Assembly: GCF_000315625.1 (NCBI RefSeq) | Contig: NW_005434648.1 | Location: 124,079 to 188,000, forward strand | Source: Guillardia theta CCMP2712 | Taxonomy: Eukaryota; Protista; Cryptophyta | Direction of reading: 5' to 3' | Length of the DNA stretch: 63,922 nucleotides | Made by a program: the position numbers and the translations under genes | The notes under the pieces: generated by a model | The model's database searches: none | What the model was told of the DNA's origin: nothing | Seen by the model: only the letters and a program-made list of their open reading frames with translations | Part shown: positions 31,340-49,016 of the stretch, piece after piece | Position numbering within the stretch: the stretch's first letter is position 1 | Layout of the letters: each line of letters opens with the position of its first letter

Positions 31340-33798
31340 GTGAGGAAGTGAAACTGCTCGAGCTCGGCAGTGTTGGGATGTTCGAGGGCGAGGAGCCGAG
31401 CGGGGTGCACGCAGGTGCTGCAGGCAGGACGGAGAGGGACGTTGGGACGGGGACGACGGGGGTTGCGGAGGAGGGGGAGGGGCTGTGAGAAGTGACGGAA
31501 GAACGCTGGGAATAAAGCCATGGAGGAGGCATGACCTGTGAGGGGCGGAAGAGAGGTGGAAGAGGATAAACGAGGATGAATTGGCGGTATTGCGTCAGTT
31601 AGTCGCGCACGTTCCAAGTCTTTCATTCCCTCTCAGCCCTTACCCCCAGAAGGGACGCATCTCTCGACCTCCAACCCCCTTCGCCAGCTCCAGCTCCAGC
31701 TCCAGCTCCAGCTCCAGCTCCAGCTCCCTCTATCCCTGCGTATCTGCTGCCCTCCGACGAAAGCGGGATTCTCCTCCACTTTTCGAAGATCATCGACGTC
31801 CGCGGCGAGCTGAAAGCTCTCTGCACTCCTAGAAACTTCTCCTCCTCCTCCCACACCAGCTTGTCAAAAGCAGTCCACGCCTTCCCTAAGAGCCCCCGGT
31901 GGTACCGCTCGAGAAATGGAACATCCTCCCTCCCTGCCTCCTCCTCCTCGTCGTCGTCCTCCTTCCTCTCCTCCTCAAGGAGCGGAAGGTCGAAATCATG
32001 CTCGTCTATGTCCTGCATCGCTGCAAAGTCCTGCTGGAACCAAACACCCTTCCCCTCCTCAGCTGGACACCCCCTGGGACCCCAAGAGTTCTCGAGAGTG
32101 TTCATCGTTCCCAGCTGCTGGTCAGCAAGTTCCCGTTGAGAGATCTCTCCTTCTCGTTCGATCCTCTCCTCTTCTCCTCCATCTCTGCCCAGCTCTCCTG
32201 CACCGCTCGGGCTGTGCGCTGCTGACGGCAGGGAGGATGGGAAGCATTGCGGAGGATGGGGTGAATCGACGGTCTTTCCCCACTGCGTGCTGGGAGTCCT
32301 GTAAGAGAAGAAGGTCCTCCCTCCCCGGTCTTCGAGGACGACTCCCTTGCGGAAGAGATCTTGGCGGATGCGATCGGCTGTGCCGAAGTCTCGCTGCTTC
32401 CTCGCAGCCTGTCGACGGCGAATCTGCTCAAGGATCTCTCCTCTGGTCAGGTGACGCTCCTGCTCCCCTCCTCTCAACGATGACTGGTCATTCTGCCTCG
32501 GGGGAGCATGAGAGGGACTGGAGAGGGAAGGCGAGGAGTGAGGAGCAGCAAGGGGAGAGTGTGACGGAGGACGATGAACGGGTTGAGCTGGAGGAGATAA
32601 GGAAGGAGAAGGCTGGGTATGATGAGGAGGAGGCTGCGAGATAGAAGGAGGAGCAGGTGCAGGAGGAGGCTTGAAAGAAGGAGGAGGAGGAGGCTTAGAA
32701 GAATGAGCAGAGAGCTGCCGTGGCGGCTCGTTGTATGCTGGCAGTGCAGAGCAACGTGGACCTTCCGTGTTCGGGTTCTCGTTTTGAGCTTCTGCCCCTC
32801 CAGGTTCCATGTAAGACTCACTCCTCGTCTCCTGCAGGCCCACAGATCATCACAAGGGAGAGGGGGAGGGGAGGAAGGAGAGGCGAAAGGGAGGGTGAGG
32901 TGGAGAAAGGTGGGGGAGGGTGAGGCAGAGAGGAGGGAGAGAAGGACAAGGACGATTCAGAGCAGAAGAGAGGGGATGCTCACTCTTTCCACTTGTTGCC
33001 TCTGCCCATGGATGTTTCCTGACTTCCTCGCGTCGGAAGAGGACGGGGAGGAGCTGGAATCCTTTTGCTTCCTCTGTATCCCATCAATTACTTGCGGAGC
33101 ACTGCCAACAGGAGCAGAAGACGGTTCGAGCCGCCCGAGCGTTTCAAGGTAAGGGAGGTCAGGGAGGAGAATACAGTTCGCCTTGGGGGGAGCAGGGCGG
33201 GCCGGGGACTCCTGCGTCGTCCTGATAGACCTTGAGCCCTTGACGAACGCGCACCCCTCATCGAATAAGTCCTCTTGCCCCGCGTCCTCCTCCTGCCTCT
33301 CCTCCCTCCTCCGCTGCCGCTGGAGAGCTTTCTTCTCTGCCTTCCTTGCCTTCTGGGTCTCCTGTTTCCTCTGCTCTTTGAGGACCTTCTTCTGTGACTT
33401 AGTCAGCTTCTTCTTCCCTTCCTCCGCTGCCTCCGCTTCCGCCGGCGGAGAAGAATTTTGACTCTCCTCCTCCCTCGCACTCTGCTCCTTCTGTGAGTCC
33501 TTGGCAACGTCCCTTGCAGCTAGACAAGACTGTGAGGCAGCAAAGAGAAGAGCTCTAGGGATCTACCTTTGCTTCCCGTCCTCTTCGTCTCCTCCTCCTC
33601 CTGCAGCAGCTCTTCCATGGCTCTGTCCGCCCTCCTTCTGGCTTCGCTCTCGTTCTCTTCAGCTGCCCTCTTGCTCGCTTTCCTGTCCTCCTTCCTCGCC
33701 TCGTGGACCATCCTCAGCCTCTTCAACTCTCTCAGTCTCTTGAGGTCGTTCAGGACCCTCTCAAGAGGCTCTCCAACACCTGACAGACAAATAACACA

Positions 33799-39400: not shown

Positions 39401-39789
39401 TCGACTTCCTCGTCTTCCTTCCACTCCTCAGAATCTTGAAGTTTCGGCCATGGCGCCAGTTACGTTCAGGACATCTCCTAGGGGTGGGGTATATGACTCA
39501 CCCCACCCAGATACACGAATTTGAAGTCACAATAAGGGGTCATCTTGCTTCACTTTCCATGCAGTGGTGGTGTGGGGGTCATTTCAGTTTCTGTTCAGTG
39601 AAAAAGAAAAACGTCAAATTTGAAAACTATCTGATCAGTGACCTGGTTCCAGTAGCGGTTTTGCTGCCTCCTCCGTTTCCTGGTTTTTTTCTTGAGGCGG
39701 ATTTGTAGGTTTTCTCCTTTTCCTCCTTGTTTGCTCCGGATTGCATTTCCATTTTCAATCAATAAACCCAAAGGTTTTCAAGAAAACCA

Positions 39790-39872
39790 TGGCAGAGTAG
39801 GTAGTGGCTAAGTGACACAAACCTTCGCCAAAAAGGTGCCGAAGGTTTGTGTCACACAGCCTGGCAGAGTAG
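39790..39872. other. Hairpin (16-bp perfect arms) bracketed by an 11-bp direct repeat
   Basis: GTGACACAAACCTTCG (39812-39827) pairs with CGAAGGTTTGTGTCAC (39840-39855). TGGCAGAGTAG occurs at 39790-39800 and 39862-39872. Confidence 0.9.
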
Positions 39873-40165
39873 AGAAAGCAAACAGTGTCTTGAACTTCAT
39901 GAGTCGAAGCATGTCCAGGTTGGGCAAGGCTCGTGAAGGAGACATTTAATGGAACCTCGGAGCTGCCTACAAGCAGTGTCTGGTCCGCGAGCTACGGTGA
40001 TCCGTCGGAAACAGCTACGGTGATCTGTCGGAAACCCGAAGACGCCAAGCTTGTGGGGGAAGGATGAGAACGATAAAGACGATTCCCCTGGCTCCTGGAG
40101 AGCCAGTTTCCAGGACATCTTGGAGGAGAACGCAAAGTTTCCGCATGCAATCTGAGTATATCCTC

Positions 40166-40980
40166 ATTCCGTGGTCAGTCCTACGAAGTATGAGCGGGGT
40201 CAGGAGTACGACGGAGTCCAGATATGCAAGTCGGATCCCGAGGCACTGACACGCTTTAACGGGGAACAGTCGACGGAGCAATCTAGCCTCGTCTGTAGGG
40301 CAAGAGGCCTGTTCCGACTCCAAACGAGAATGTGCAGGGCAAGGAGAAGAAATTCGACAAGAAAAAGGTAAAATGCGACAATTGCCAGCTGTTTGGTCAT
40401 TTCAAAGACAAGTGTCCTCTTTTGCCCAAGTCTGAGCGATCCTGATATACCTCCATCTGCAGGCGGCTACGGGCCGTTCAACAATGCCGTATAACTGTTG
40501 AACCTCGTTGAATCAAGTCTTTACCAATGGTTCCCATGTCAATTCAGTACAAGGCACAAACTATTATTCTTAACGCATTGCTCGACACGGCGGCTGAGGC
40601 TGAGTCTTTGATCAGTAGGGTTGCAGTGCGTAAATTTGGTCTGTCACCTGGTTTAGGGTTTAGGTGTACGTTCTGCGACGACTTGAACCTCGATCGCAAG
40701 TTTCCTCGACCTCCTCACCATGGCCGCTCACAACATGAGGGAAGGACAGACCCTTGTAGCTGATGAGGCCGGTGATTGAAGGAATCAGATGACTCTGAGC
40801 ATATTGATGTCTCATACATGATGACAATGAGTGAAGGTTAAAACCAACAGCAACCAATGTCACTCCACGTTGAGCCAACACACGTTGACTGTGCTCACAC
40901 CTCTCAGTGTTCGTACAAATTTCAAAGCATCTTTTGGTAATGGTTAAAACGCTGCCTCTGATTTTATGCTAGCTTGCTCT
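40166..40980 (+). mobile_element. Decayed retroelement gag/protease remnant, left direct repeat
   Basis: CCHC knuckle CDNCQLFGHFKDKC (40374-40415), then aspartic-protease-like NALLDTAAEAESLIS (about 40572-40616). Interrupted by stops and frameshifts. Confidence 0.75.
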
Positions 40981-41068
40981 GAGGCGGCTGTGGTATAGTC
41001 TATTTGTCTGCCTGGCTTGCTGCTACTAGAGTAATAATATCTTCCTATCGTTGAGTAAAGGGTTGCTA

Positions 41069-41308
41069 GGAGGAGACACAGGAGGAGCGCCAGGAGGAGA
41101 TACAGGAGGAGCGCTAGGAGGAGATACAGGAGGAGCGCTAGGAGGAGATACAGGAGGAGCGCTAGGAGGAGATACAGGAGGAGCGCTAGGAGGAGATACA
41201 GGAGGAGCGCTAGGAGGAGATACAGGAGGAGCGCTAGGAGGAGATACAGGAGGAGCGCTAGGAGGAGATACAGGAGGAGCGCTAGGAGGAGATACAGGAG
41301 GAGCGCTA
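41069..41308. repeat. 24-bp minisatellite, 10 copies (GGAGGAGATACAGGAGGAGCGCTA)
   Basis: Nine identical units and one variant. The minus strand reads (PPSAPPVS)n. Confidence 0.95.
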
Positions 41309-41779
41309 GGAGGAGTTGCAGGAGTTGCAGGCCGCCTCGGAGGAGAGAAGCAAAACCAAACTGTAGGCGACAGAGGCGGATCAAGGAGCTTGGACACATT
41401 GAAACGCAGGGTCAGCCAGTAAGTGCTTCATCCTTGCATACTGGTAACAACGGGATAGACGTGTGGGCGTAGGGAGTAGGGTTTATTGTTGGTGGTACAT
41501 TCGGATTATGGTAGAGTAGGCGTAAGAATGCGTATAGAGGAAGAGGGAGGAGATGAGAGCAGCAGAAAAGAGCAGAAACTCTTGCTGAAGATCGCCAGCT
41601 GTTAGGATCTTGCATAACGAAGTCGTGGTGCATGCTGATGATGATGGAATGAAAATCACAGGTAGAGGAAAGTGATAAGTATTAGGCGAGAGAGATTAAG
41701 GTGGGGTGATGAAGAACAGGTGATAATGAGCTGTGGCAGGGAGCTGGGAGGGCAAACAAGGAATAGGGGAATTGATCGT

Positions 41780-44362
41780 ATGCGAGTAAAGCTCGTTTCC
41801 CGACTACATATTTGCTTTGCAACAGCCTATTTGCTAGGGATGATCGTCGCAAGTAGCACTGCTACTCGTCCAATTTCAACTAGTGAGAGCTCAGGATCAT
41901 CAAGTGCGTCTCACAATCATTTCCCCAAGCGACCGCGGAGGAGTGCAGATAGAGTTTTGGTCTATTCTGCCATGCAGGATCCTTATATCAAATACCTGAT
42001 GGAAGAGCTTGGAAAATGCAATGACGAGCGCAAAATCGCGAAACTCAATCTGGAGCTAAAGACGGCACTAGACAAGCTGGCATTGAGGGAAGAGCGTCTG
42101 AGGCTTGAGGGGGTGATGGACACGTGCCAAAACCCGGAAAGGAAGGAGGAGCTAAAGGCGGCACTAGACAAGCTGGCGTTGAAGGAAGAGTTGATAAGGC
42201 ATGAGGAGAATATCCGAGAAGAGCGGATGAGGGCTGAACAGAGAATGAAAAAAGAGCGTCTGAGGCTTGAGAGGAAGATGGACACGTGCCAAAACCCGGA
42301 AAGGAAGGAGGAGCTAAAGGCAGCACTAGACAAGCTGGCGTTGAGGGAAGAGCGTCTGAGGCTTGAGGGGGTGATGGACACGTGCCAAAACCCGGAAAGG
42401 AAGGAGGTGCTAAAGGCGGCACTAGACAAGCTGGCGTTGAGGGAAGAGTTGATAAGGCATGAGGAGAATATCCGAGCAGAGCGGATGAGGGCTGAACAGA
42501 GAATGAAAAAAGAGCGTCTGAGGCTTGAGGGGAAGATGGACACGTGCCAAAACCCGGAAAGGAAGGAGGAGCTAAAGGCAGCACTAGACAAGCTGGCATT
42601 GAGGGAAGAGCGTCTGAGGCTTGAGGGGGTGATGGACACGTGCCAAAACCCGGAAAGGAAGGAGGTGCTAAAGGCGGCACTAGACAAGCTGACGTTGAGG
42701 GAAGAGCGTCTGAGGCTTGAGGGGGTGATGGTGGACACGTGCCACAACCCGGAAAGGATGGAGGAGCTGAAATGCAGATGGAAGCAATTTGAGAGACAAA
42801 TTTATCGAACACCAATACAACTATCATCGTTCTTAGCAATCAGGAAGATACCAGAATACCGTAACAATTCCGAGTTTATCAGGTTTCCAGCCCAGTATCT
42901 AAAATTTGCAGGTGTTGGGGAACATTTGGCGGAGAAGGAAAATGATAGCATGGATGCTATGGTATACTGTCGACAGGCAGTCCAAGAGCAAATGAAATTC
43001 ATGCAAGAAGCAGTGATAAAGAGAGGTTGCTTTGGATGGGTGAATGGATCGCCAGGGACCGGAAAGTCATTGACGGCGCTTGCCTTTTGTCTCGGACTTA
43101 ACAGTAGCGCATGGAATGTTTGCTGGCTTCATTTGTCAAGGTTCAATTCACCGGAAGGGCTTCTCAGGAACGAGCAAGGTGTTCGCGCAGTAAAGCTCTT
43201 AAGTTACTCTGATCAAGACATGCTGAGTTGCCTGGGACTGACTGAGTCCAATCGTCCGGCGTTGATCATTCTAGATGGATACCGGAAGTCGGAGCGATGT
43301 GAATCGCTGGTTGAATTATTGAGCGATTGGCGAAATCAAGACAAGAGTATGCGTCGTTTACTTGTTGTGACTTCTATGTCAGGGAACATTAAAATTCAAG
43401 GAGGAGAAGATACTAGACTTGAAATGGAGTTTTTCTTTGTCAATCCATGGACAGAGCAGGAATATCTTTCTGCCGTAAAGTGCAACGAGTTCTACGAATT
43501 GGTGAAGGAAAACCTTGATTCGGAGATGGTCCTGGAATCTCATGGCAATCAGAGTGATCGTAGGATCAGAATTCAATCGAAGTATTTTTATGCTGGAAAG
43601 TCATCGAGGTGCATGTTTGCATGGAATACGTCAGAGGTGATAAAACGGCTTAGACGAGTCTTGACTGCTGTCCAAAACTTTGAATCACATATGAGTTCGG
43701 GAACGCAGTCTCCAAATTTGATCGACGGCTTGTTCTCAGTAAGAAGAGATGCCGTCAGCCAAAGTGATTGCCTGACATTTGTCAGTGAATATGTGGCATT
43801 CGAATTTGCCATTCGCATGGGCCCAGACCGATTAAGAAAGTGCGCAGCATTGTTCGAACCAAACGATCCGATAATGCAAGGGAAATTTTTCGAAATATTG
43901 TTTTTTGCCACGATTGCTGCACAAGACCTTCAGATTTTCTGGAGAGTTGGAGGAAATGGCACAGAAATCTGGCCTAAAGGTGTGGTCAAGATAGTGTCAA
44001 ACGATCTCGATCAGACTTTTTTCGATGGGAATGAAAATGGTTTGTGGGCAAAGCCATTCAACTTCAATCATCCAGCCTATGATGGTGTTTTTCTGAACAA
44101 GACAGATGGATCAGTGCGCTTCGTGCAAGTAACAATCGCCAAAGAGCACTCGTTGAACCTTGCTCCATGTGCAAAGTTCTTGGAAAAACTGACAAATATT
44201 GGCTTCTGCGTCAGAAATGTGGAATTCTACTTCGTTGTGCCTAAAGCACTTGAGCGCTTTAAGGTATCAAATTTTTCTAATCCTAACGCATTGACAGACT
44301 ATGGTTGGGAAATTGGTACGGAATGGAACAAAATTCCAGTAGTAGGCATCGATATCAAATAG
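41780..44362 (+). CDS. Crinkler/RHS-type (CR) protein: helical repeats + P-loop NTPase + restriction-endonuclease-fold domain; intronless; start 41780 or 41972
   Basis: Walker A GSPGTGKS (43046-43069), Walker B LIILDG, LLVVTS, FFVNPWTEQEY, KYFYAGKSSR, GKFFE, LWAKPFNFNHPAYDGVF..VRFVQVTIAKEHSL, VEFYFVVP. These motifs are characteristic of CRN NTPase+REase C-termini. Confidence 0.85.
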   Translation: MRVKLVSRLHICFATAYLLGMIVASSTATRPISTSESSGSSSASHNHFPKRPRRSADRVLVYSAMQDPYIKYLMEELGKCNDERKIAKLNLELKTALDKLALREERLRLEGVMDTCQNPERKEELKAALDKLALKEELIRHEENIREERMRAEQRMKKERLRLERKMDTCQNPERKEELKAALDKLALREERLRLEGVMDTCQNPERKEVLKAALDKLALREELIRHEENIRAERMRAEQRMKKERLRLEGKMDTCQNPERKEELKAALDKLALREERLRLEGVMDTCQNPERKEVLKAALDKLTLREERLRLEGVMVDTCHNPERMEELKCRWKQFERQIYRTPIQLSSFLAIRKIPEYRNNSEFIRFPAQYLKFAGVGEHLAEKENDSMDAMVYCRQAVQEQMKFMQEAVIKRGCFGWVNGSPGTGKSLTALAFCLGLNSSAWNVCWLHLSRFNSPEGLLRNEQGVRAVKLLSYSDQDMLSCLGLTESNRPALIILDGYRKSERCESLVELLSDWRNQDKSMRRLLVVTSMSGNIKIQGGEDTRLEMEFFFVNPWTEQEYLSAVKCNEFYELVKENLDSEMVLESHGNQSDRRIRIQSKYFYAGKSSRCMFAWNTSEVIKRLRRVLTAVQNFESHMSSGTQSPNLIDGLFSVRRDAVSQSDCLTFVSEYVAFEFAIRMGPDRLRKCAALFEPNDPIMQGKFFEILFFATIAAQDLQIFWRVGGNGTEIWPKGVVKIVSNDLDQTFFDGNENGLWAKPFNFNHPAYDGVFLNKTDGSVRFVQVTIAKEHSLNLAPCAKFLEKLTNIGFCVRNVEFYFVVPKALERFKVSNFSNPNALTDYGWEIGTEWNKIPVVGIDIK
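42058..42770 (+). repeat. Coding repeats A (96 bp, 32 aa) and B (162 bp, 54 aa) in the order A-B-A-B-A-A'
   Basis: KAALDKLALREERLRLEGVMDTCQNPERKEEL units; 258-bp higher-order period; near-identical at DNA level. Confidence 0.93.
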
Positions 44363-44910
44363 CTATTGTGAATCTAGAGTGTGATACAAGCTGTTGCTCT
44401 GATCAATAGATTTCAATTAAACCCCCTGTGGTTCTCATCCGAATTTGTGGCGCATGAGCATACTTTCAATGAAGGTTACATTCATGATACATCATTACAT
44501 TCGAATGAGTATTCATCAGAGGGTCCATTTTGAAGAGAGCTTCCAGAATGATGCTAACCTTTGATGAATCTCAAGTCGTTACTATTGCTCGCAGGGAGGC
44601 ACGTCCCAACCTCGTATCATATCCTTTCTACCTTCGATCAACACATGATCTGTTCAAAGTTGACGTCCTTCCTATATCTTCTTTCTTTCTGAGCTTCCCT
44701 GTCGTTGATCGTTCTCAAAGCAGAAGGGGCAAGCAGAAGGATGTTTGTGCATGGCCCGTCTGCTTGAAGTGCTGTGCTCATCATCTCCGACCGCAAAAAC
44801 GTCTCTCGACCTACGAGTTTGATGTCAACCTTCTCGTAGCAGCAAGTCAACCGGAAACTTCACGAGAATACTCTCAACCCCCAGCTTGCATGTGCAAATA
44901 AAGAAGCAGG

Positions 44911-45480
44911 ATTCCGTGGTCAGTCCTACGAAGTATGAGTTTGGTCATTTCAAAGACAAGTGTCCTCTTTTGCCCAAGTCTGAGCGATCCTGATATACCT
45001 CCATCTGCAGGCGGCTACGGGCCCTTCAACAATGCCGTATAACTGTTGAACCTCGTTGAATCAAGTCTTTACCAATGGTTCCCATGTCAATTCAGTACAA
45101 GGCAAAAACTATTGTTCTTGACGCATTGCTTGGTCTGTCACCTGGTTTAGGGTTTAGGTGTACGTTCTGCGACGACTTGAACCTCGATCGCAAGTTTCCT
45201 CGACCTCCTCACCGTGGCACAGCAGTTGAGGGAAGGACAGACCCTTGTAGCTGATGAGGCCGGTGATTGAAGGAATCAGATGACTCTGAGCATATTGATG
45301 TCTCATACATGATGACAATGAGTGAAGGTTAAAACCAACAGCAACCAATGTCACTCCACGTTGAGCCAACACACGTTGACTCTGCTCACACCTCTCAGTG
45401 TTCGTACAAATTTCAAACTTGCGGCTTCGTTTGGTAATGGTTAAAACGCTGCCTCTGATTTTATGCTGCTAGCTTGCTCT
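44911..45480 (+). mobile_element. Right direct-repeat copy of 40166-40980 with two internal deletions
   Basis: Colinear from attccgtggtcagtcc to agcttgctct. Lacks the equivalents of about 40195-40391 and about 40583-40636. Confidence 0.9.
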
Positions 45481-45759
45481 TGAGGAGTTACAGGTCTCCA
45501 GAAGGGTCCATGCTTCCAACAAAACGTTGGCGAGGCACAAGGAGCGCAACGGGAGCTCAGCGACTGTGAAGCTTCTGCTCCCAAGCAATCACACCGCCAA
45601 GACTTCCGCCCCCGACCATGTTCGGTTGTTCCAGAAGATCCATGCTGCATTCGAGGGCCTCCAGGACAACGAGGAGACGGACTCCTGCGAGACAGCAGAG
45701 CCTGGAATGAGACGATGACCGTGAGCATTTCTTCTGCCTGACGGTGAGGGAGGAGGTTC

Positions 45760-47080
45760 ATGTTGGAACCAACTTTGTCATGATGAGAAACGTCTCAAGC
45801 TGGCAGCGATGCTGCCGAGCCTGCCGGTTGTTTGTGAGGGAGAGGCACATGAAGTGATGGCTATCCCAGGTTGGATCATAGTTGCACGTTCTGGACATGG
45901 TCGTCATATTTTCATGTGATTCATCTTTCGATGAATCATGTACTTGGATCGAACAACTTGATTTCAGGCAGTCAAAGCGTTGAGGAAAAATTGCTGCTGG
46001 TTGAAGACACAAGTATTCGCAAGCAGACGCATCCAGCCCTGATGAGGTAGATCACTCTTCCTCTTCCATCACTCATCAACTTCACCGTCAGCTCACTTGT
46101 CTCTGGGAGCATTCCTTCCAGACTTCCTCCCTCGCTATTCCATGATGATTGTCACAATATCACGTTAGCGCGTCATGGTAAGGCGCAAAGAAACATGTTT
46201 GCTCCTCCAGAGGGCTGCAGTCTGAGCGGTTGATGCAGGGAGCTCAACAAGCGTCATGTCAAGGCTGAAGCATCTGGGTGGAGAGCTCTTGCGCTTGATC
46301 TGGAGGCTGTGAGATTTGTTGAAGGGCCGTGGACAGCAAGCGACAACGAGCAGCGCGTGTCTCAAGTTGCTCATTTCATTCACTACTACGACTCTTCTAT
46401 CAGACCTCTGCATGCCTGCAAGATTGAAGCCTTTCTCAACAAGAATCCAGGTGCCCTTCCTTGTTATCTCCTGTCTCCGGTGACTCTGACGTCGTCCGGC
46501 TATACAAGGGCACACAGCACTTGTTCATGTCAAGAACTCAGAGACTCTCTCAAGATCTTTCCCTGGTGATTTGACGTCTCGCTGGAACTTTGCGATGACC
46601 TTGGCTCCAGTCAAGTCAGAGAGGGTTCAGCTTCGGGTCATCAACCTGACTGAAGACTTTCATGCGACGCCCATGGAGGTTGTGCTGAGATCAAATCATT
46701 CACCTGCTTCTCATTCACATGGCAGGAATGGTTCCAATCAGGTGTATGGCAGGTACGTCGAGGCTTTATCTCTCCTGTCTTGCGACGCTCAACTCTGATC
46801 GGGCTGTTTCTGTTGTGCAGACCGCCCTTCACAAGGCTTTAGACTTGTGCGATGGTCTTCGGCTTGCGATCATCTACAAGTACGGAGGTCGCAGTGAGGG
46901 AGAGGGAGTGACCGTGTGCTGAACTCTGTGCCAGGCTGCTACGTCGACCTGGATATGGTCTCTCTCAACAGGATCGACCACAATGGTGATCGCCGCTACC
47001 GACTCTGCTTCATTCTCACTCCTCGCAATGGCGAGCAGGGTCAGTGCTGGTTGCGATGGACGAAGGCCAGAGGTCAACGT
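45760..47080 (-). pseudogene. Possible decayed coding sequence of unknown family
   Basis: Protein-like fragments in shifting frames with in-frame stops, for example DDRKPKTIAQV*SLVKGGLHN and SDLTGAKVIAKFQRDVK. Confidence 0.25.
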
Positions 47081-47746
47081 GGGAGGTGAGGGAAGAGGAG
47101 GGTGCGAGCTCGTAAGGGGATGAAACCAGACGCCCTGGGGAGCGCATTTCTACCTTGGGACCGATTTCTTCCAGTTCCCTCCCCGCCACCAGTTCGTGAA
47201 TGATCTGATGAAGGTATAGACGGCCGGACCAGCGTGTGCGCGGGGGGCAGGTAGACGGGAGAGGAGAAGGAGGGAGAGGAGAAGGAGGGAGAGGAGAAGG
47301 AGGTGGAGGAAGTCAGGAGGAGTTGGGGAGTAACTTGGTCCCCAGAGTTTGCCTTCCCATTTCTCTCCGTCTGGATACGCGCTCCTGGGTCCATCCTTGT
47401 TCAGCGCAGTTTACCAAGACAAGTGCCTGAGGGAGAATGAGGTGAGTGGAACAAACAAGCCGTTGCAGGAGAATCGCAACGAGGACCGACACCTGATTGT
47501 TTTCTGTTCGTTTCTTTTCGTCTTTTCCTCCTCCTCCTCCTCTCCCTTGACATCCTTGCTGGTCTCCTCCTGCTTCTTTGCAGACTCGACCATCCTACTG
47601 CAACTCGATGACGATCTTGGAGCCCAAGGCTTTCCATCCCGTCAACATGTTCAATAGGTTGAGGAGGAATGATGAGGGGCAGGGCAATGACTTGCAAGAC
47701 AACAGCGTCGTTTTGTCGTTCCCTTGGACTGAAAGATGCACGCAAG

Positions 47747-47748
47747 TA

Positions 47749-47780
<32 letters not shown>

Positions 47781-47783
47781 ATG

Positions 47784-47825
<42 letters not shown>

Positions 47826-47828
47826 ATG

Positions 47829-47867
<39 letters not shown>

Positions 47868-47970
47868 ATGGAGATGGAGATGGAGATGGAGATGGAGATG
47901 GAAATGGAGATGGAAATGGAGATGGAGATGATGAGGAGGAGGAGGAAAAGGAGGAAGAAGAGGAGGACTG
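47747..47970. repeat. (GAT)n/(GGAGAT)n compound microsatellite
   Basis: Directly visible. Confidence 0.95.
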
Positions 47971-49016
47971 AGATAACTTTGTATTTTTCAAATCGTCATC
48001 AAGATCAAGGAGATCATTCAGTCTTCGATCGGCATGCATATGTGGGATACCAAACGAGGCTCCCTCAACCTTGACTTGTCAACCAACTCGATGTTGGCGA
48101 AGGTAGTCGAGCACGGGACGGCGTCAGCTGACGGCCCCGCAGATCACTCAAGTCACTTGCCCTCTCTCTTATCAGCTCACGTCTCAAAGGGCCAGCGACC
48201 GCCGACAGCAGGTGACGTTGGAGGCTCCCCGCTTGAGTTACAAGCTGGTCCACAGGTGGAAGGGAGCGAGCTCTGGGATCGACCAGACCTCGTCCCCCGG
48301 AGGATGCACCTCATCGAGTCTGTTCGAAGGAGCGCGAGGGCAGGAGACAAGAATCTCTCCTCCTCTGTCCTTCACTTGACCCTCCTCGCACGGGAGCTGA
48401 GGGAGAAGGCTGACGTGGAGGTAGGACTGACATGCCCCAGCTGGATGTCAGCTGATGTCGATCCCTGCAGGAGAGCCCGAAGGTCTTTTCGCAGCTGTAC
48501 CGCGAGGCTCTTCTCCTCTCCTCCCTCGCGCTGCGCCTGCGACCAAAGGACCCTTGGGCCCTCAAGGAGGCCGAGGAGGCCGGGGGCTCGCTGACGAGGA
48601 AGTGGAGGAGAAGACTGTTAGCGCTCCATCATTCTCGTCTGCCTCATCGCTTCTTGCCGTCGTGATGATGCCGCTCAGCCTTGCTCTCTTCCTATTATCT
48701 CAACACCTCTCGCCCCCTGCTGCTCTTGTTGGCTCTTGGACACAACAAGCAAACGGTAGCTTCTCCTGGATAAATGGATTGATGGATGGATGAATGAATT
48801 TTCCCTCTTTCTCTTTTTCTTTTCTCTTTCTCTGGCTACTCATCACAATACCTGTTTCTGCAATACCTGTTGCTGCAGCGTTTTGAGAAGAGATGAAATT
48901 TATTCTCAAAGGGGATGTTTTGCAATCAGACAAGCTTGAGCTGTCCACCAACGACACGCCACCATCAGACAGGCGACAGATATTTACAGGAGGAGAGGAC
49001 AAGAGCAGCAGGATGA

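Follow-up and report, generated by a model that had tools for sequence, protein, structure and literature searches.

An intact Crinkler-RHS-type NTPase gene between two unique direct repeats of a gypsy-derived remnant in Guillardia theta

Results

The window analyzed here is a 63,922-nucleotide stretch of the Guillardia theta CCMP2712 assembly (contig NW_005434648.1, positions 124,079 to 188,000, forward strand). Within it, two colinear copies of one repeat lie on the same strand, copy 1 at 40166-40984 and copy 2 at 44911-45480, and the 3,926 nt between them (40985-44910) contain one 896-codon open frame (41672-44362). The initial annotation of the locus had described two colinear copies around a 3.9-kb cargo with a single intact open reading frame, and repeat finding and alignment confirmed this picture. 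Where they align, the copies are 97% identical, with 16 substitutions in 571 aligned bases (2.8%). Copy 2 is missing 188 nt (40203-40390) and 54 nt (40583-40636), and three further small indels separate the copies. Both edges of the repeat are sharp; no similarity above shuffled controls was found in the 200 nt beyond each end. At the right-hand edge, the alignments contain GAGG, a 4-nt possible microhomology. As DNA, the repeat occurs twice in the 87-Mb genome, both times at this locus, and the other genome matches to it are at least a dozen full-length gypsy elements that are 72 to 79% identical. The sequence downstream of copy 2 (45481-47000) is unique in the genome. The features of the locus are as follows, with the Crinkler-RHS type of gene abbreviated CR.

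39637..39772, forward strand: dispersed non-coding element of 123 to 136 nt, stopping ~20 nt short of the remnant's gag ATG
39770..40165, forward strand: upstream part of the gypsy remnant, outside the repeat (tblastn and blastn against the intact relative L061:1401-7168)
40166..40984, forward strand: repeat copy 1, with gag residues of about 193-226 and 425-475 (CCHC knuckle) and pol residues 34-90 (protease start, LLDTA)
41041..41330, no strand assigned: minisatellite array (24-nt unit) bordering the CR unit on its 5' side
41330..44845, forward strand: gene-sized CR unit, common to the window and the paralogue at contig 161:97544-101055 (blastn and boundary alignments)
41780..44362, forward strand: CR open frame (frame open from 41672; stop codon TAG at 44360-44362)
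42023..42796, forward strand: coiled-coil header of tandem 258-nt (86-amino-acid) repeats
43046..43279, forward strand: P-loop NTPase core, with Walker A GSPGTGKS at 43046-43069 and Walker B LIILDG running to 43279
43880..44359, forward strand: C-terminal restriction-endonuclease-like domain (alignment, domain model and structural matches)
44911..45480, forward strand: repeat copy 2, with the same ends as copy 1 and the two deletions given above

By sequence comparison, the repeat is a sub-segment of a dead Ty3/gypsy chromovirus remnant, covering the end of gag and the start of the protease, together with 340 nt of other DNA. The earlier reading of the repeat as a retroelement gag-protease remnant was thus correct, as its match to an intact chromovirus in the same genome (L061:1401-7168) demonstrates. 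This 5.8-kb Ty3/gypsy element has 228-nt long terminal repeats (LTRs) that are 99% identical, a gag with a CCHC knuckle, and a pol composed of protease, reverse transcriptase (RT), RNase H, integrase, and chromodomain. Upstream of the repeat, ~20 nt from the end of the leader survive, together with the gag start codon (ATG at 39789) and stretches coding for gag residues 15-33 and 63-115; a palindrome with a 16-nt stem interrupts this part of the remnant at 39812-39855. Within copy 1, the retroelement-derived part stops at 40644, and the remaining sequence is unrelated to the retroelement. The CCHC knuckle (CDNCQLFGHFKDKC) and the protease motif NALLDTAAE encoded in copy 1 match the intact element. 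The initial annotation had assigned a knuckle and an LLDT motif to the repeat in general; this holds for copy 1, whereas in copy 2 the DT of the protease motif is gone and the knuckle is missing its first half. These two motifs tie copy 1 to the Ty3/gypsy class, and neither copy is a complete or mobilizable element. The remnant contains stop codons and large internal deletions; an LTR search of the window found no LTR or LTR pair at the remnant; pol sequence beyond residue 90 (RT, RNase H, integrase) occurs nowhere in the window; and neither an integrase remnant nor any other pol remnant was found downstream of copy 2. The left edge of the repeat falls inside a longer remnant that runs upstream; copy 1 therefore occupies its original surroundings, and the repeat lacks ends that would make it a unit in its own right.

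Sequence comparison and structure prediction identify the cargo as an intact CR gene, coding for a P-loop NTPase with a restriction-endonuclease-like (REase-like) domain. The candidate start codon at 41780 opens a hydrophobic leader followed by KRPRR and is in-frame and conserved in the paralogue; an alternative methionine at 41972 corresponds to the start of the annotated paralogue. The part of the gene that encodes the NTPase and nuclease has a GC content of 43.4%, against 54.7% for the whole window and ~50% for other family members, so the frame is, as first proposed, both uninterrupted and AT-richer than its surroundings. A dN/dS of 0.37 relative to the paralogue, at a dS of 0.086, indicates that the gene is under purifying selection, and with these values it is probably functional.

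The coiled-coil header occupies the place of the ubiquitin-like header of Crinklers, and its copy number differs between the window gene and the paralogue. Neither an LxLFLAK ubiquitin-like header nor PF20147 was found in the window protein, which is therefore not a canonical Crinkler effector. The Walker A and Walker B columns are invariant in an alignment of 19 homologues, in keeping with a P-loop NTPase, and the fold matches of this domain in the Protein Data Bank (PDB) are ORC/Cdc6, RFC, and mS29-type ATPases (AAA+/ORC-type). In the C-terminal domain, the conserved residues are a glutamate (E, in FFEILFF), an aspartate (D, in AYDGV, 44081-44083), a Q-V-T motif (from 44126), and a histidine (H, 44147-44149). 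This is a variant of the nuclease motif, Q-x-T versus the usual (D/E)-x-K, with threonine at the position usually taken by lysine. The domain model has a pLDDT of 88.8 (79.7 for the whole predicted structure). Its best structural matches are nearly all REase-fold nucleases, the top ones including SdaI, N.BspD6I, McrC, FokI, and NucS, at weak Z scores of only 4.0 to 4.7, and Foldseek returned no match to the domain at an E value of ≤0.001. The model is thus consistent with an REase fold, at a weak level of similarity.

Homology and predicted fold together place the window protein in the CR family. Chytrid proteins that carry the Crinkler header PF20147 match it with E values of 1e-58 to 1e-53 over 92% of the query (P0004, 5e-58; P0007, 5e-53), so the homology extends over the whole module. 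The predicted structure superposes on Crinkler clusters with TM scores of 0.82 and 0.68 (atlas features score, 0.99) and on an RHS cluster, 95% of whose members carry PF07999, with a TM score of 0.61. The description of the cargo as a Crinkler/RHS-type NTPase with an REase-like domain is accordingly upheld. Pfam searches of the whole open frame gave sub-threshold P-loop matches only (NPHP3_N, 17.3 bits; AAA_11), and the RHSP and Crinkler models did not match the window protein. This NTPase-plus-REase module is the one proposed for CR conflict or defense effectors. In such a protein, the P-loop NTPase would gate or load the enzyme and the REase-like domain would cut nucleic acid, making the window protein a putative nuclease.

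The closest database protein is GUITHDRAFT_119905, with 93% protein identity, encoded on contig 161 (114,700 nt) of the same assembly. This only close paralogue shares 41330-44845 with the window and nothing else. The two genes can be told apart at 66 sites. The minisatellite aside, this CR unit takes up the whole interval between the repeats except for ~60 nt at each end. At the position of the minisatellite, the paralogue has a different array with a 39-nt unit, and neither the repeat nor any flanking direct repeat was found at the contig 161 locus. The non-coding divergence between cargo and paralogue is 7 to 8.6%. The boundary of the CR unit is also where L065, a metagenome contig of independent origin with 99.3% identity to the gene, breaks off (44846). 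No A-run occurs in 44830-44910, the position of a poly(A) tail at the 3' boundary of the unit, and the flanking duplication is 0.8 kb in length; the locus thus lacks the poly(A) tail and short target-site duplications of a processed retrogene. At the paralogue, 57 nt past this same 3' boundary and on the gene strand, lies a gypsy pol fragment of 48 residues (799-846, integrase) that is 60% identical and contains one stop codon.

At least 85 matches in the genome belong to the CR family, and most are long uninterrupted frames; the absence of introns is therefore a family-wide trait and is not peculiar to the window copy. Around 28 further CR loci, we found no gypsy fragment within 1.5 kb and no flanking direct repeats except those of tandem gene arrays. 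The arrays on contigs 84, 28, and 17 have homologous upstream and downstream flanks, and the family often grows by tandem duplication. At the loci compared, paralogous CR genes thus do not carry the same flanks, a check that the initial annotation had suggested. Gypsy pol copies lie near CR genes in small numbers (lists are lower bounds): 1 within 5 kb (0.45 expected), 2 within 10 kb (0.76 expected), and, within 25 kb, at 5 of 55 family members (1.6 expected; P = 0.02, uncorrected). The signal is not significant at 5 to 10 kb, and we regard it as too weak for a claim of gypsy enrichment near CR genes. An objection raised at the outset, that the repeat might be a common dispersed family with no enrichment near CR genes, applies in part: the parent retroelement family is dispersed and only weakly enriched near CR genes, and the repeat itself is confined to this locus.

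We compared the locus with public sequencing runs. Contigs match three of the four joins exactly: remnant to copy 1 (39900-40420 in run X1, 40040-40556 in run X2), cargo to copy 2 (44714-44968, X1), and copy 2 to downstream sequence (45438-45700, X1 and X2). These exact matches make a misassembly unlikely, with the proviso that X2 is possibly the source data of the assembly and so may not be independent. Across the join of copy 1 to cargo (40984/40985), depth is present and no spanning piece is among those listed. Contigs specific to the window locus in X1 are at single-copy depth (57 to 78), and no excision or circle joint is listed for either of these reference-like runs. In X5, a freshwater metagenome with a related strain, the end of the cargo is joined to a repeat in which the 188 nt are present; the deletion in copy 2 therefore postdates the arrangement. 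Where copy 2 meets the downstream sequence, this run also departs from the window: the 30 nt that precede 45495 in X5 occur in neither the window nor the genome. The locus thus varies between strains. Repeat and cargo in X5 have 2 to 3 times the depth of the outer flanks. Depth was rejected as a measure of copy number, since contigs of X1 and X2 carry the letters of the paralogue at double depth over 42860-44200, for which a collapse of the two paralogues is the best explanation. Metagenome scans with a 25-mer of the repeat and with the protein gave no matches, and neither did a scan of viral contigs with the family alignment. In probable RNA runs, 21 to 49% of the words of the open frame are present. 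These runs were rejected as evidence for expression of the window copy, as many 31-mers are common to both paralogues and, wherever they are informative, the 13 raw RNA reads have the letters of the paralogue.

Discussion

We lean toward a single historical rearrangement as the origin of this locus: one insertion or template switch that duplicated 0.8 kb of its target and left a scar, not a working cassette. In this account, a ~3.5-kb copy of a G. theta CR gene would have landed beside or inside a long-dead, LTR-less gypsy remnant, and the same event would have placed 0.8 kb of target, the remnant tail plus 340 nt of neighboring DNA, on both sides of the insert. A polymerase (DNA polymerase and reverse transcriptase are both candidates) would reach the right end of the 0.8-kb stretch, switch to another template to copy the CR unit, and then return to the local template, resuming at the left end of that stretch. 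If a circle carrying the stretch had integrated instead, the outcome would be the same. The anatomy of the locus, the uniqueness of the repeat, and the boundaries of the unit are observed, and from them we infer an insertion or template switch. The coincidence of the ends of the CR unit with the ends of the repeats is what insertion with target duplication predicts. Against a simple insertion, the repeats are 2.8% apart, while the cargo and its paralogue differ by 7 to 8.6% in non-coding sequence and have the dS given above. The repeats therefore look younger than the split of the paralogues, which would imply that the donor is absent from the assembly, that gene conversion homogenized the repeats, or that the repeat was duplicated later.

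That last discrepancy disappears if the CR unit was there first, the repeat and cargo were tandemly duplicated, and a later deletion removed the second cargo. Tandem duplication is a habit of this family; the duplication breakpoint and the deletion would, however, both have to fall within ~60 nt of the ends of the CR unit, which the paralogue defines independently, a double coincidence that leads us to judge this history unlikely. A retro-captured origin, raised in the initial annotation, is possible and, in our estimate, still rather unlikely. Here reverse transcriptase would have jumped from gypsy RNA to a CR mRNA packaged with it and then returned to the gypsy RNA, so that 0.8 kb was copied twice, and the chimeric cDNA would have integrated. 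Such an event fits the common strand of the gene and both repeats, the absence of introns, the presence in the genome of intact chromoviruses with 99%-identical LTRs, and the same-strand gypsy integrase fragment that adjoins the close paralogue at the same 3' boundary (0 of 28 other CR loci have one). The intronless state is shared with the whole family, however, and the locus has no LTRs, primer-binding site, or poly(A) tail, nor a pol remnant downstream of copy 2; moreover, the repeat ends in 340 nt of DNA that does not come from the retroelement, and the remnant was already heavily deleted.

The proposal that the locus is a composite mobile or amplifiable cassette found no support in the comparison with the genome. 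Recombination between the repeats would pop out a circle of repeat and CR unit that is able to reintegrate or amplify, and direct repeats of 570 to 820 nt with 97% identity would be good substrates. X5 could be read in this way, given its raised depth and a contig that joins the end of the cargo to a copy-1-type repeat. Yet summed depth doubles anyway because both repeat copies and both paralogues collapse in contigs, and the joint is equally the ordinary passage from cargo to copy 2 in a strain that keeps the 188 nt. With a repeat unique in 87 Mb, a paralogue that lacks it, no second instance in the reference genome of a gene with these flanks, and locus-specific X1 contigs at single-copy depth with no extra joints listed, we consider a cassette quite improbable. 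An assembly artifact, in which the second repeat copy would be a misjoin, is exceedingly unlikely. The reference is an older draft in 669 contigs, but exact contigs from X1 and X2 cross from copy 2 into downstream sequence, X1 also crosses from cargo to copy 2, the copies differ by indels and 16 substitutions, and the related environmental strain has the cargo-repeat join as well. The one-time insertion or template switch with target duplication is thus the account that we carry forward, and a striking picture of a gene between repeats can be the scar of a one-off rearrangement.

CR proteins are best known as pathogen effectors. How their families expand, and why free-living eukaryotes keep large ones, is the question on which this locus bears; its host is, as first supposed, a free-living alga. 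The locus adds a documented cryptophyte member that is intact, under purifying selection, and equipped with an unusual coiled-coil header. Among the papers searched, none linked Crinkler or RHS with Guillardia. CR proteins with a P-loop NTPase and REase module, including those of free-living eukaryotes, were described by Zhang et al. 2016, according to section 11 of PMC5289972, which summarizes that work. The window protein agrees with this class, as that section presents it, in its free-living host and in a module whose entire length is homologous to chytrid proteins with a Crinkler header; it differs in a tandem coiled-coil header, perhaps with a hydrophobic leader, in place of the ubiquitin-like LxLFLAK type, in the silence of the Pfam RHSP and Crinkler models, and in its Q-V-T...H nuclease motif. 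What had already been described, then, is the occurrence of CR proteins in free-living eukaryotes, the NTPase-plus-REase module, and the neighborhood of transposons; this locus combines them with an unusual header and a one-off flanking duplication.

Several known systems share parts of the arrangement. Trypanosome RHS genes are hot spots for retroelements (PMC5289972). Like them, the Guillardia genes are a CR family of many members in physical association with retroelement sequence, and the window protein resembles their products in fold (TM score of 0.61). In trypanosomes, ingi/RIME non-LTR elements reportedly insert at a fixed site inside the RHS genes (work attributed to Bringaud et al. 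2002), whereas in Guillardia an LTR-type remnant flanks one gene and gypsy fragments occur at 2 of 30 CR loci. Phytophthora CRN genes lie in helitron-rich regions, and one of them, PITG_23144, has a gypsy insertion (PMC5289972); there too CR genes sit among transposons and gene-sized units are duplicated, but the Guillardia retroelement piece is outside the gene, not inside, and no helitron features were found at the window locus. AACRNL, a teleost Crinkler-like gene that has multiplied together with adjoining hAT elements and has been proposed as a selfish gene (PMC12957317), is likewise a Crinkler-like gene of a free-living organism with transposon sequence on its flanks. It differs in having an ADP-ribosyltransferase effector, another transposon class, and flanks common to many copies, whereas the Guillardia flanks belong to one locus. 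With Ty3/gypsy chromoviruses, the repeat has in common the gag CCHC region and the beginning of the protease, as they are found in the intact 5.8-kb element; unlike them, the window piece is a remnant with stops and deletions and without LTRs, RT, or integrase. Insertional duplications that arise by template switching, of the MMBIR/FoSTeS type or from retroviral transduction, also place an ectopic segment between direct target duplications, with sharp ends and possible microhomology, a likeness that is an analogy of outcome only.

Both members of the window subfamily adjoin gypsy fragments at the same 3' boundary, which hints at a retroelement link beyond accident. We therefore put forward, as a doubtful proposal, that Guillardia CR genes spread as gene-sized units through a process connected with repeated DNA, with the window locus as a caught intermediate. 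On that reading, the 123-nt element and the boundary gypsy fragments may be signs of a carrier element or of an insertion hot spot associated with CR genes. The alga would then have its own version of the trypanosome "retrotransposon hot spot," and the 0.8-kb repeat would be a side product of that mechanism. If the element and the boundary fragments are mechanistically linked to CR dispersal, the amplification of the family would become testable in a culturable alga. A profile search of the genome with PF00589, for Crypton recombinases, gave no match; such a search is weak for divergent recombinases.

The part most worth attention is the recurrent upstream 123-nt element. At least 40 copies, 80 to 96% identical, were scored among 116 candidates. 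We considered the element as a gypsy LTR or leader and rejected this, as it has no significant similarity to the intact element except in the last ~20 nt before the gag ATG. Clusters of the element lie within 5 kb of a CR gene in 4 of 33 cases (0.27 expected; P about 1.5e-4) in a post-hoc test on lower-bound lists. With an nhmmer profile, copies of the element in gene orientation were located upstream of the reading frames in L032/33/34, L040/44, L053/55, and L037. It thus adjoins CR open frames of at least four other subfamilies, which have a mutual protein identity of only about 30 to 35%, and in L033/34 it ends 42 nt before the ATG.

A dispersed element upstream of CR frames and the gag remnant

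A pyrimidine-rich element of 123 to 136 nt is dispersed in the genome, with at least 40 scored copies and 116 candidates. In several diverged subfamilies of the Crinkler-RHS-type NTPase-nuclease (CR) genes it lies a short way 5' of the open frame, on the gene strand, and the window copy sits shortly upstream of the dead Ty3/gypsy retroelement's gag ATG. The element may be a promoter module, a MITE, or a piece of an unknown element.

Copies of the 123- to 136-nt element (L numbers, other stretches of the genome)
window 39637-39772: upstream of the gag ATG
L033:112-246: upstream of a CR frame
L034:406-540: upstream of a CR frame
L040:554-655: upstream of a CR frame
L044:521-624: upstream of a CR frame
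L055:738-845: upstream of a CR frame
L053:691-756: upstream of a CR frame

The start of the gag remnant is broken by a perfect palindrome with a 16-nt stem (arms 39812-39827 and 39840-39855), close to which an 11-nt direct repeat, TGGCAGAGTAG, lies on either side (39790-39800 and 39862-39872). This region (39790-39872) looks like a tiny foldback insertion.

Edges of the CR unit and nearby gypsy sequence

At matching 5' edges of the CR unit, different minisatellites have expanded in the window copy and in its closest paralogue, GUITHDRAFT_119905. Downstream of the paralogue, 57 nt past the end of the shared unit, lies a 48-residue Ty3/gypsy integrase-region fragment with one in-frame stop.

Features at the unit edges
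window 41041-41330: minisatellite, 24-nt unit
contig 161, about 97600-97960: minisatellite, 39-nt unit
contig 161:101112-101255 (L031:3593-3736), same strand as GUITHDRAFT_119905: integrase-region fragment

Upstream of the annotated paralogue's start, window 41780-41971 is conserved in frame in both CR copies, and its translation gives a leader-like hydrophobic stretch and then KRPRR; the true start codon may therefore be at 41780.

Elsewhere, an apparently intact 5.8-kb chromovirus (L061:1401-7168, contig 90) has 228-nt LTRs that are 99% identical. Several near-identical pol copies at other genomic sites suggest that its family was recently active.

Paralogue letters and strain variation

Over window 42860-44200, contigs from public sequencing runs X1 and X2 carry the letters of the contig-161 paralogue at roughly double the single-copy depth; among the contigs listed for this region, none has the window's own letters. 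This pattern probably reflects the two paralogues collapsed in the contigs; a less likely source is gene conversion, or an additional copy present in that strain. In a related environmental strain (freshwater metagenome X5), the end of the cargo between the direct repeats is joined to the repeat, at window 44876, by a different 6-nt junction, and the repeat there retains the 188 nt missing from copy 2. This strain also carries 110 nt, directly before window 45495, that are absent from the reference genome.

Other features of the window

window 47709-47981: long ATG/GAG-rich triplet array
window 31626-32843, minus strand: open frame matching PF23493 (cysteinyl-tRNA ligase anticodon-binding domain; E 5.5e-07), an ordinary nearby host gene
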